Sequence record: OP953026.1
DNA length: 64,000 nt
Strand: one strand, 5' to 3'
In this document: one piece after another, positions 50,791 to 56,197 of the stretch
Position numbering within the stretch: position 1 is the first letter of the stretch
How the letters are laid out: each line of letters opens with the position of its first letter
Made by a program: the position numbers and the translations under genes
The notes under the pieces: generated by a model
Databases searched by the model: none
Told to the model about the DNA's origin: nothing
Seen by the model: the letters and a program-made list of their open reading frames with translations, nothing else

Positions 50791-50817
50791 ACCAGCCCTT
50801 CGGGGCTGGTTTATTTC
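50791..50817 (+). terminator. intrinsic terminator (UUCG loop)
   Basis: ACCAGCCC-TTCG-GGGCTGGT followed by TTATTT. Confidence 0.85.
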
Positions 50818-52166: not shown

Positions 52167-52188
52167 TTTATTTAAAGGTAATACAAAT

Positions 52189-53097
52189 ATGCTAAAGGTA
52201 AAATCATTACTCACTGGCCATATTCTTCGAGCTACCTATGATTGGTTTCTTGAGAATAACTTCAGAGATATTCTAATTGTAGCACATACTCAATTAGTAC
52301 CTGATTTATCTGAGGTAGCTCTAAAGCATGCGAAAGAAGATCACACTATCACTTTCAATATCCATCCACGCTGTGCAAAGAATTTTTATATCAGTGACGA
52401 ATATATCTCTTTCAATGTAACAGTAAATGGAGTTGGGGTCAGTATTAAACTTCCTCTTTATGCAGTATTGGGTGTAGTTACACCTATTGATGATAATTCT
52501 AACGCATTCTTTGAAATGCCACTAGTAGATAGATATCTCAATGCAGATACTATTCGTGCAACATTAGAAGGAACTGTTAATAATGTAGTTGACAAAAACC
52601 CAGTATTAACTACCGTAGGTAATGTCACTGAGGTTAATTTTAAAAATAAAGCCGATACCACTAATGGTAAGTTAGTTGTAAGGAATACATCTGAGAATGA
52701 GCATGATCAGATGATTGAAAGCGCCATTAACAGAGTAACTGAATTTAGTAATCCAGAATTAGATGCACATATTAGAGTAGCGGTAACTGTAATTAAACAG
52801 AATGCACCAGAATTAATTATGGATTGGTGTGAGCGGGTTATTAATTGTACACGTAATGAAAACTATCAGGATAACATCAATGTACTTATGATGGAACTTC
52901 TCAGTTACCCTATTTCAAATGTGGTCAGTGAATCAACTGTTGACTCGGGTGATAATACATCTAATTCATTTGACAATGATGTAAATAAGATGGTTGAGGA
53001 TTTCAATAATTCTTCCAATTCGCAGGTTATTATTAATAAACCTTCTCGTCCTACCGGTCCACCAAAACTCACTGTTATTAAAGGTGGTAAGAAATGA
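52189..53097 (+). CDS. sspB: SspB-like (stringent starvation protein B) ClpXP adaptor
   Basis: ILRATYDWFLEN...ITFNIHPRC...ISFNVTVNG...KLPLYAVLG follows the SspB domain; C-terminal RPTGPPKLTVIKGGKK resembles the ClpX-binding motif. Confidence 0.8.
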   Translation: MLKVKSLLTGHILRATYDWFLENNFRDILIVAHTQLVPDLSEVALKHAKEDHTITFNIHPRCAKNFYISDEYISFNVTVNGVGVSIKLPLYAVLGVVTPIDDNSNAFFEMPLVDRYLNADTIRATLEGTVNNVVDKNPVLTTVGNVTEVNFKNKADTTNGKLVVRNTSENEHDQMIESAINRVTEFSNPELDAHIRVAVTVIKQNAPELIMDWCERVINCTRNENYQDNINVLMMELLSYPISNVVSESTVDSGDNTSNSFDNDVNKMVEDFNNSSNSQVIINKPSRPTGPPKLTVIKGGKK

Positions 53098-53351
53098 ATG
53101 CAACTTTAGCAATTCTTTTTAGTAGTATCAGTATCGCTGGTTATCAAGCCAATGGTGCATCGCAGTCAACCGCTGAGTTCTCTGACATGGCTACTTGTTT
53201 TAGCGCGATTGAGCGCATTCAAAAACTAGCTAAAGCAAGTGCTATTCGTAATAATGTAGAGACTGTAAAAATCAGTGATGGTGTTCTATTACGTTATTTT
53301 TCTTCTAGTACTAGTAAAGTAGAACATACTCTAATCTGTGTAAATAAATAG
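53094..53351 (+). CDS. small predicted secreted protein
   Basis: 85 aa with a hydrophobic N-terminus and two Cys. Confidence 0.6.
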   Translation: MNATLAILFSSISIAGYQANGASQSTAEFSDMATCFSAIERIQKLAKASAIRNNVETVKISDGVLLRYFSSSTSKVEHTLICVNK

Positions 53352-53359
53352 GTACGGAT

Positions 53360-54067
53360 ATGTCTGAGAAAATGTATTTATCTTTTTCTGGAATTGGACA
53401 CAATGACGTAATCAAACAAGATCTTAATGGATTCGTTCCAATGGATGTATCAACTATTGATAATGAAGTAGCTAATCGATTATTTTACACTCCATTCAAT
53501 AGTTCTGAACCAGGTACCTCATTACCTAATGTTGCTAATGTGGTATTCAAGGTATTACCTATCCATATCGAGGATAACACTATCTGTGTTTTAGATAGTT
53601 GTTCTAGTACCGAATACTCATTGAATGACTTAGTTGATACCAGTGTCTCATCATTAGAAACATATGGTCCATTAATAGATTTACGTAGTAGTGATCCAAT
53701 TGAGACATATGCTAATCAGGCAGTGTATACTTGGTTAAATAAGAATATCTGTGATATCGAATTTGAAGTACATGGCGGGCTGCAAGTGCAACTAACTGCT
53801 GACCAAGTGCGTTCCAATGTTAATGCATTTGTAGCAGGTATTGATCTTGACATCGACGATAAATTGATGGTATATGTGGTGATTAAAATCAATGATCGTT
53901 TATACGATGCTTGGTCTAGTCAACATGTGGTGGAACCATTAACAATGTATCATGTACAAGGTGGTCATGAGCCTATTGTCTATAGTGAAACCCATATTGA
54001 AAATAGCCTATTGCGATATGCTAAAGAGAAAGGTTGGGCTGAAATTTTGACTCGTATTGGTCTGTAA
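53360..54067 (+). CDS. hypothetical protein
   Basis: 235 aa ORF. Confidence 0.7.
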   Translation: MSEKMYLSFSGIGHNDVIKQDLNGFVPMDVSTIDNEVANRLFYTPFNSSEPGTSLPNVANVVFKVLPIHIEDNTICVLDSCSSTEYSLNDLVDTSVSSLETYGPLIDLRSSDPIETYANQAVYTWLNKNICDIEFEVHGGLQVQLTADQVRSNVNAFVAGIDLDIDDKLMVYVVIKINDRLYDAWSSQHVVEPLTMYHVQGGHEPIVYSETHIENSLLRYAKEKGWAEILTRIGL

Positions 54068-54493: not shown

Positions 54494-54694
54494 ATGGATC
54501 GTCTTGATGAAAGAATCACATTCAGTGTAAAGTCGTACAAAATTTTCAATGCTCTCTCCCATGGCCGAGTTCGGGCATTGATTATTAACTTTAAAGATGG
54601 TAAGGGTACGATCGTATCTATTAGTGATGATCGCCGCCATGATAAACATCTCTGGTTCAACTGTGGACTAGTAGACAATCCGAGGATCAAGTAA
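54494..54694 (+). CDS. small hypothetical protein
   Basis: 66 aa, TAATG-coupled to thyA. Confidence 0.6.
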   Translation: MDRLDERITFSVKSYKIFNALSHGRVRALIINFKDGKGTIVSISDDRRHDKHLWFNCGLVDNPRIK

Positions 54695-56160
54695 TGGAAC
54701 AATATCTTAATTCAATCCGTTTAGTTAAAGAACACGGTGTACATAAAGGTGACCGTACTGGTACTGGTACTCAGAGCATGTTTGGTCAACAAGAACGTTA
54801 TAGTCTGCGTAATAATCGGCTACCAGTTGTAACCACCAAGAAGATTCATCTAGCTTCTGTAATTCATGAATTGTTCTGGATGCTGTCAGGTGATACTAAG
54901 GTGGATTACCTGATCGCTAATGGTGTACGCATCTGGAACGAGTGGGTTAAACCTGAAACCGCAGTATATGAGCCGATGACCGATGAGGCCGTTCTTAAAG
55001 CAGTAACTGCCCTCATTGGTGCCCCATTCGTAATGTACTTACATTGTATGAACGATGACTCTACTCCATTCATTGAGACTGTAGCGGAATTCGAGTCGGG
55101 TATGACTCCAGAGACTATTCAGGCCTTCTGGGATGAATATCCAGTTAACCGTGAGGAAATCCAATACATCATTGGAGTTAGCGTAACGTCGTGGAATAGG
55201 TTCGCTACTGAAGGGTTCGATGAAGCCAAAAATCCTGAAGGTATTCGTGCTGAATATAACAAGCGACTGTATCGTGCTTTGATGCATAAAGAACCAGAGC
55301 GTCTGGTCGGCGGCGATCTAGGTGCTGTTTACGGTAAGACATGGCGTAATCTTGAAGACACTCGTGTAATCCCTAAATATGAGTGGTTTGATTATGAGAA
55401 GCGTGGTTTTGACTTCGTGGCGGATATCCCAGGTACAACCATGGAAACCGATCGATGCGTGGTTACTCGACGTATCGACCAAATCCAAGACATCATCGAT
55501 CAACTTCGCACCAACCCGGATTCTCGTCGGATCATTGTTTGTGCATGGGCGCCACATCTTATTGATGAGCAGGCACTCCCACCTTGCCACGCATTTATTC
55601 AGTTCTGGACCCGTGAACTGACCGTAGATGAACGAGTGCAAGCTCTAGACCAAACCCAGTTCGAAGCTGATGCTTATCATGATAAGATTAGTGGTGAGAT
55701 TACTCGTGGTCAACCTCCATTCGATAGTGCTGAGCAGGTTAAAGCACTTCTGCGTGTCTGTCGTGGTTATGAAAAGGCTACAGATGAAGCAGTAGTAGAA
55801 TGGCTGGATCAACATGGTGTTCCTAAACGTGCATTGAGTTGCCAACTCTATCAAAGATCTTGTGATACTTTCTTAGGAAAACCCTTTAATATCACGTTCT
55901 ACAGTCTGCTGACCCATATGTTAGCTAACCAAATGAATATGATTGCTGAAGAGTTTATCTGGACTGGTGGTGATGTACATATTTACTCTAACCACCAAGA
56001 ACAAACTGATCTTCAATTAACTCGTGAACCGAAGGTTCTACCTACCATCCGTTTTAAAGAAGAAGCTATTGGTAAAGATATTCGGGAAATTGGTGTAGAT
56101 GATTTTGTTATCGAGAACTATGAATATCATCCACACATTGCTGGTAAAGTTGCTGTTTAA
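54694..56160 (+). CDS. thyA: thymidylate synthase (ThyA) with large insertions
   Basis: DRTGTGT, IWNEW, catalytic ALPPCH, LYQRSCD, and HIYSNH motifs. Confidence 0.96.
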   Translation: MEQYLNSIRLVKEHGVHKGDRTGTGTQSMFGQQERYSLRNNRLPVVTTKKIHLASVIHELFWMLSGDTKVDYLIANGVRIWNEWVKPETAVYEPMTDEAVLKAVTALIGAPFVMYLHCMNDDSTPFIETVAEFESGMTPETIQAFWDEYPVNREEIQYIIGVSVTSWNRFATEGFDEAKNPEGIRAEYNKRLYRALMHKEPERLVGGDLGAVYGKTWRNLEDTRVIPKYEWFDYEKRGFDFVADIPGTTMETDRCVVTRRIDQIQDIIDQLRTNPDSRRIIVCAWAPHLIDEQALPPCHAFIQFWTRELTVDERVQALDQTQFEADAYHDKISGEITRGQPPFDSAEQVKALLRVCRGYEKATDEAVVEWLDQHGVPKRALSCQLYQRSCDTFLGKPFNITFYSLLTHMLANQMNMIAEEFIWTGGDVHIYSNHQEQTDLQLTREPKVLPTIRFKEEAIGKDIREIGVDDFVIENYEYHPHIAGKVAV

Positions 56161-56168
56161 CATAAAAC

Positions 56169-56197
56169 GCCTCCCTTCGGGGAGGCTTTATTTTCCT
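56169..56197 (+). terminator. intrinsic terminator (UUCG loop)
   Basis: GCCTCCC-TTCG-GGGAGGC followed by TTTATTTT. Confidence 0.85.

Follow-up and report, generated by a model that had tools for sequence, protein, structure and literature searches.

The product of gene gp232, carried by a phiKZ-like jumbo phage of Pseudomonas aeruginosa, is best explained, with somewhat more confidence than doubt, as a ClpX-tethered and highly divergent SspB-type adaptor whose cargo has changed, and it most likely plugs into the ClpXP protease of the host. Like bacterial SspB, the predicted protein consists of a folded domain, a disordered spacer and a short C-terminal ClpX-docking peptide. Phage genes resembling sspB were known before, being annotated in EL, pf16, RAY, and some phiKZ-like records; what is new here is a predicted XB core that is not terminal and is followed by an invariant Gly-Gly-Lys cap in Pseudomonas jumbo phages, an arrangement absent in bacteria. 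In the literature searched, no description turned up of this capped tail, of its confinement to Pseudomonas jumbo phages, of the long spacer, or of the spacer's helical unit. For now, the finding of an adaptor stands at the level of sequence annotation.

The gp232 Gene and Its Context

The window (the whole stretch of DNA analyzed, 64,000 nucleotides) matches bases 1-64000 of Pseudomonas phage pPA-N1803-4At.2 with 100% identity; this is a phiKZ-like jumbo phage whose host, P. aeruginosa, is the one named in the preliminary description. The open reading frame placed there at 52189-53097 was confirmed on the plus strand from the ORF list and translation, with its ATG start at 52189 and its stop codon at 53095-53097. 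The encoded protein shares 99.7% identity with PHIKZ232, and the reading frame is uninterrupted in 47 phiKZ-like genomes, with identities of 97.7-100%. The features of the locus are as follows.

50791..50810, plus strand: terminator-like hairpin (consensus scan), the likely upstream bound of the plus-strand cluster containing gp232
52174..52179, plus strand: Shine-Dalgarno-like AAAGGT, read from the sequence, 9 nt 5' of the gp232 ATG
52189..53097, plus strand: gp232 gene, ortholog of PHIKZ232, 302 amino acids plus stop (ORF list and translation)
53094..53351, plus strand: 85-amino-acid ORF (ORF list; one CDS in phage Bobae) whose ATG overlaps the gp232 stop (ATGA)
56169..56186, plus strand: terminator-like hairpin (consensus scan) 3' of the thymidylate synthase gene, the likely downstream bound of the cluster

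The scan for the terminator consensus returned nine sites where 2.8 were expected. Between its likely bounds, gp232 lies in a plus-strand cluster of ORFs without assigned function, upstream of the thymidylate synthase gene. Bacterial loci are arranged rpsI-sspA-sspB; gp232 has no sspA neighbor, and the sspA-sspB operon arrangement was not found. ARAGORN detected no tRNA or tmRNA gene over positions 1-64000 of the window. The ATGA overlap suggests coupled translation of gp232 and the 85-amino-acid ORF, which has no Pfam match. The stretch 53094-53351 is a single ORF in the window and in Bobae and two short CDSs (PHIKZ232.1 and 232.2) in the phiKZ reference record. The following gene, gp233 (53360-54067, plus strand), encodes 235 amino acids with no Pfam match and shows a weak pairwise similarity (E 8e-4 over 63 amino acids) to a 224-amino-acid protein encoded behind the SspB-like gene of phage D6, suggesting from sequence that the two genes may form a pair conserved with D6. 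The thymidylate synthase (54694-56160, plus strand; 488 amino acids) has a Pfam match split into two stretches, and its residues 2-306 span only positions 1-154 of the 266 in the profile, indicating large insertions relative to an ordinary ThyA.

The name 'stringent starvation protein B' is already attached to the gene in two GenBank records (Bobae and Churi), and most others describe it as hypothetical. At the orthologous position in phage U5 (MT995928.1, 3590-4495), a feature is labeled 'HNH homing endonuclease'; since gp232 has no HNH endonuclease domain, the label seems either to be wrong or to belong to a feature that overlaps the gene. Two fragments 94-97% identical to gp232 (P0004 and P0005, on contigs of 312 and 216 bp) were entered under Klebsiella pneumoniae as hypothetical proteins and are most likely a carry-over of phiKZ-like phage reads into Klebsiella assemblies.

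The protein is made during infection. PHIKZ232 was detected by mass spectrometry in phiKZ-infected cells, and a fluorescent fusion was diffuse in the cytoplasm and did not localize to the shell; PHIKZ232 was also enriched in a sample of the phage-nucleus shell and co-fractionated with shell interactors (PMC10449902), which hints at another partner.

The N-Terminal SspB-Like Domain

The gp232 protein can be divided into the following segments, all encoded on the plus strand.

52210..52566, plus strand: SspB-like substrate-binding domain, residues 8-126 (phmmer, Foldseek, pLDDT and Pfam)
52567..52692, plus strand: linker 1, residues 127-168, predicted to be disordered (pLDDT below 50 over 130-168)
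52693..52902, plus strand: orphan four-helix bundle, residues 169-238 (predicted model)
52903..53040, plus strand: linker 2, residues 239-284, predicted disordered (pLDDT below 50), with an Asp-Phe motif (F272)
53041..53082, plus strand: predicted XB-like ClpX-docking core, residues 285-298 (9/14 identity to the Pseudomonas SspB tail; matrix score)
53083..53094, plus strand: Gly-Gly-Lys-Lys extension behind the XB core, residues 299-302 (translation; family comparison)

The likeness of the N-terminal part to SspB, proposed from the letters alone in the preliminary description, holds up on several lines. A phmmer comparison with SspB chains in the PDB gave an E-value of 1.4e-8 over about residues 11-110, and the NCBIfam SspB models matched with E-values down to 8e-13. 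The AlphaFold model of gp232, computed from an alignment of 18 sequences, has a pLDDT of 70-85 over residues 8-126, and a Foldseek search with the N-domain retrieved the SspB structures 1OUL, 1OX8, and 8ET3 with probability 1.0 and target-normalized TM-scores of 0.69-0.76. The last of these is the ClpXP-SspB delivery complex. The fold is thus matched, whereas the score against the Pfam family suggested for checking it, PF04386, stays at 24 bits, below the cut-off of 27. Likewise, the best of the NCBIfam equivalog models ('ClpXP protease specificity-enhancing factor') scores 48.7 bits against a cut-off of 202 for that model (135-319 for all of them); in the same run, P. syringae SspB and the pf16 protein gp18 both exceeded their cut-off. 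The likeness of this phage protein to SspB had been called mimicry; the likeness stands, but retention of a homologous module is the better reading.

The domain is very divergent. An alignment of 79 distinct bacterial SspB domains has 41 columns with at least 90% conservation; gp232 retains the bacterial residue in 14 of them, and a loop that does not vary among the bacterial proteins is replaced across the whole phage family. In SspB, high conservation is limited to the dimer interface and the groove that binds the ssrA tag (PMC9963277). Because most of the near-invariant positions, which on this account would be those of the groove and the dimer interface, have been lost, the binding specificity of the gp232 N-domain is probably altered relative to that of its bacterial counterparts. 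The domain is nevertheless constrained. In a comparison with the relative P0002, 61% identical overall, the N-domain is 74% identical while the linkers have drifted to 55 and 67%, which suggests that it binds something.

The C-Terminal Tail and Its Cap

The 45-residue tail of gp232 is too short for phmmer, which returned chance matches only when the tail alone was compared with the PDB, and a position matrix was chosen for this reason. It was built from 43 distinct tails drawn from Salmonella SspB (identical over its full length to the E. coli SspB of 8ET3) and from 80 chromosomal sspB loci, a sample retrieved with pf16 gp18 as the query and hence biased toward relatives of that protein. The SspB of P. 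aeruginosa, published as 135 amino acids in length, is absent from the 80 loci, and the tail form typical of the genus Pseudomonas was used in its place. Residues 285-298 of gp232 score 12.5 bits on this matrix. No other of the 25,946 14-mers in the six-frame ORFs of the window reaches this value (the runner-up scores 2.1), and five of 20,000 shuffles did so. An alignment made with MAFFT likewise puts the gp232 tail under that of Salmonella SspB.

A single tail form is found in all 39 SspB proteins labeled as Pseudomonas and in 2 of the remaining 41. Residues 285-298 of gp232 agree with this form at 9 of 14 positions, far more than chance would give. The match takes in the hydrophobic core, in which the Pro, the Leu, and two branched hydrophobic positions of the bacterial tail are retained, and extends upstream into the Pseudomonas-specific part; because it spans both, it points to descent of the gp232 tail from a Pseudomonas-type SspB tail and to a continued fit to it. 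One locus assigned to another genus (L022; NZ_VWXI01000005.1, Pantoea sp. Cy-639) also encodes the Pseudomonas-type tail and, as the Pseudomonas entries do, shows 52% identity to pf16 gp18; its genus label may be wrong.

The C-terminal XB likeness claimed in the preliminary description is therefore upheld, but not its position at the extreme end. In all 80 bacterial SspB proteins the XB motif forms the exact C-terminus, whereas four residues follow the core in gp232. The addition is a family trait: Gly-Gly-Lys stands behind the core in all 20 relatives from Pseudomonas jumbo phages, followed by one further residue in 19 of them and by none in the other, and none of the 80 bacterial proteins has Gly-Gly near its C-terminus. 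An XB-like hydrophobic core, Gly-Gly-Lys, and at most one more residue are accordingly common to all 20 relatives with an SspB-like N-domain. Within the core, the column of Leu294 holds Leu in 14 relatives, Trp in 4, and Met and Phe in 1 each; that of Val296 holds Val in 15 and Leu in 5; and that of Ile297 holds Ile in 19 and His in 1. The phage cores depart from the bacterial ones in having Ile for Val (Ile in 19/20 phages, Val in 75/80 bacteria), Gln for the final Lys (Gln in 14/20, Lys in 78/80), and Thr or Arg in place of Lys/Arg.

The tail is also the best-conserved segment of gp232, with 94% identity to P0002 (17 of 18 residues), and the last 11 residues of PS119XW gp267 are those of gp232 even though the N-domains of the two proteins are just 24% identical. 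Conservation of this strength supports the view that the tail is a working docking peptide. The Gly-Gly end was also considered as a ubiquitin-like conjugation signal and rejected; the N-domain has an SspB fold and not a beta-grasp, and the residues preceding the glycines match the XB tail.

The Spacer and Its Helical Unit

Between the end of the N-domain and the XB core, gp232 has 185 residues where bacterial SspB has a spacer of 20-40, in agreement with the long linker of the preliminary description. The extra helical subdomain that it had placed there is likewise borne out by modeling. Linker 1 is composed to 67% of polar or small residues. When modeled alone, the four predicted helices of residues 169-238 form a bundle with a pLDDT of 88 and a pTM of 0.77. 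The bundle has no structural neighbor in the PDB (best E-value 1.8), and among 1.84 billion representatives searched exhaustively with HMMER, its only relatives beyond phiKZ-like phages were one 318-amino-acid protein and a fragment. From residue 241 to the C-terminus at 302 the pLDDT of gp232 is below 50; the Asp-Phe motif (F272) falls inside a weak helix at residues 262-273, some 20 residues before the tail, and F272 reaches at least 90% conservation in the family, the motif being present in PS119XW gp267 as well.

The helical unit is the least conserved part of gp232, at 43% identity to P0002 with insertions and deletions, and is limited to phiKZ-like phages and one metagenomic relative. 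That it is poorly conserved, confined to a genus, and without a structural neighbor argues against its serving as the general cargo-recognition device of this family. Two further, weak matches over residues 115-198 were rejected, one to Fur (Pfam E-value 0.008) and one to staphylococcal superantigen-like protein 7 (PDB E-value 0.002; 26 bits in NCBIfam against a cut-off of 313). Both concern an Asn/Lys/Thr-rich stretch modeled with low confidence, lie far under the cut-offs, and are absent from P0002.

Relatives and Comparable Systems

The 20 relatives were gathered by a profile search, searches of phage genomes, and a viral fold library; narrower scans of viral contigs gave no further relatives. 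They come from phiKZ-like phages, PS119XW (Pawinskivirus), EL (Elvirus), Phabio, Psa21 (Tepukevirus), D6, RVTF4, and metagenomic contigs of about 305-317 kb, so that the same type of tail is spread over at least four named genera of Pseudomonas jumbo phages. The SspB-like proteins of Noxifer and RTH11 lack the tail. Among the long relatives, PS119XW gp267, Psa21 gp299, Phabio gp349, and the proteins of D6 and RVTF4, together with EL gp086, share the N-domain and Gly-Gly-Lys tail of gp232, and most also have a long spacer with an Asp-Phe-Gly motif; EL gp086, unlike gp232, is short (155 amino acids). Phabio gp349 further resembles gp232 in being encoded adjacent to thymidylate synthase. The middle regions of the long proteins are unrelated to that of gp232 (no BLAST similarity).

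Bacterial SspB (E. coli, Salmonella, and Pseudomonas; PF04386; 1OX9, 8ET3) shares the N-domain fold with gp232 at detectable homology but is smaller, at 124-166 amino acids against 302, and has neither a four-helix bundle in its spacer nor Gly-Gly-Lys-Lys behind the XB core. A second group of phage-encoded SspB homologs, comprising Erwinia phage RAY gp039 (150 amino acids), P. putida phage pf16 gp18 (128 amino acids), and Ralstonia phage FLC1-1B gp93 (135 amino acids), differs from gp232 in being of bacterial size and ending in a canonical XB motif without extension. These short proteins belong to PHROG 8945, whereas the gp232 family corresponds to PHROG 25970 (707 bits) and matches PHROG 8945 weakly (E-value 3.5e-4, 21 bits, residues 14-99). 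RAY gp039 is cytoplasmic (PMC10299810), as is PHIKZ232, and both it and pf16 gp18 have been discussed as ClpXP adaptors or competitors (PMC5587285, PMC10299810). A similar strategy has been proposed for the ClpS copies of jumbo phages, which would bring targets to the host ClpAP (PMC7824862), although ClpS has a different fold and serves the unfoldase ClpA instead of ClpX.

In D6 (L004:3852-5231) and Psa21 (L005:3814-5178), genes annotated as 'cell division protein FtsH' lie two genes downstream of the SspB-like gene. This label was rejected, each of them encoding a BCS1_N domain and an AAA ATPase with no protease domain; such a gene is not conserved beside the SspB-like gene in other genera, and no BCS1-like or AAA+ gene adjoins gp232 in the window.

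Proposed Function and Alternatives

In the SspB dimer, the folded domain takes hold of the tag, and the disordered C-terminal segment carries at its end the peptide that the ClpX N-domain binds; in the SspB-ClpX delivery complex this tethering of the tails to the N-domains is the chief stabilizer (PMC9963277, PMC8138137). By analogy, the gp232 tail would find its docking site in the cytoplasm, and so outside the phage nucleus, on the N-domain of host ClpX, which binds zinc; the invariant Gly-Gly-Lys extension would tune or strengthen the interaction. The N-domain would take up a peptide cargo other than the ssrA tag, as expected because most of the positions that are near-invariant in bacteria have been replaced, and this cargo would be passed to ClpXP for degradation. 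The docked protein would at the same time compete with host SspB for its site on ClpX, and the four-helix insert may be a genus-specific accessory.

It is also conceivable, if rather unlikely, that gp232 mainly occupies the ClpX N-domains with its tail and delivers nothing, shutting down the degradation that depends on host SspB and on the N-domains; the benefit could be, for instance, that phage proteins are protected or that host stress signaling is disturbed. A tail that is the most conserved part of the protein, carrying a Gly-Gly-Lys that is invariant in the phages and absent from their hosts, is what would be expected of a peptide tuned to outcompete, and the domain in front of it has lost most of the positions that would make up a canonical groove and dimer interface. 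Competitive inhibition is moreover an idea already in print for pf16 gp18 (PMC5587285), and it has been argued that the weak binding of empty SspB matters for avoiding competition (PMC9963277). What such a blocker leaves unaccounted for is the N-domain, whose 74% identity while the linkers drift, and whose fold persisting across genera, exceed the needs of a pure carrier for the tail unless it serves dimerization only. The adaptor and the blocker are compatible with each other, since an adaptor that docks on ClpX competes with host SspB in any case.

A different partner altogether seems improbable. Here the tail, and especially its Gly-Gly-Lys end, would dock on a phage AAA+ machine or a component of the phage-nucleus shell in place of ClpX, the SspB fold being reused as a general module for peptide binding or dimerization. 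The BCS1-like AAA+ ATPase encoded two genes downstream of the homologs in D6 and Psa21 would fit such a role, as would an extension that has no bacterial counterpart and the enrichment of PHIKZ232 in the shell sample with its co-fractionating shell interactors; but tagged PHIKZ232 was not seen at the shell (PMC10449902), gp232 has no AAA+ neighbor in the window, and Phabio, PS119XW, EL, and phiKZ do not have the BCS1-like neighbor. The 14-residue match, including its Pseudomonas-specific upstream part, is also hard to explain without ClpX. Least probable by far, and already disfavored, is that gp232 is a decaying relic of an sspB gene captured long ago and drifting without a specific function. 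Its scores below family cut-offs and its fast-evolving, orphan middle region could be taken that way, yet 47 phiKZ-like genomes contain the ORF intact (97.7-100% identity), the protein has been found in infected cells, its tail is near-invariant, and homologs that share this tail come from at least four named genera.

Implications

To our knowledge, only a handful of phage proteins reprogram a host AAA+ protease via its adaptor site. A wider reading, which we put forward as unlikely, is that the nucleus-forming jumbo phages of Pseudomonas share a re-engineered ClpX-docking peptide, made of the host SspB tail and a Gly-Gly-Lys cap, that out-binds the host adaptor; a phage adaptor with a rebuilt groove would then redirect cytoplasmic ClpXP to host defense or regulatory proteins, and genus-specific inserts would add further targets. 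If adaptor function is true, a viral SspB derivative with the docking tail of its host and an altered cargo surface would amount to a natural device for targeted degradation. The recognition of XB peptides by ClpX is used in engineered degradation systems, and the Gly-Gly-Lys cap, as a clear sequence feature directly addressable by structural work, could refine the rules of that recognition. For the phages themselves, gp232 could help explain how those that form a nucleus deal with the host cytoplasm, through which their own proteins have to pass.
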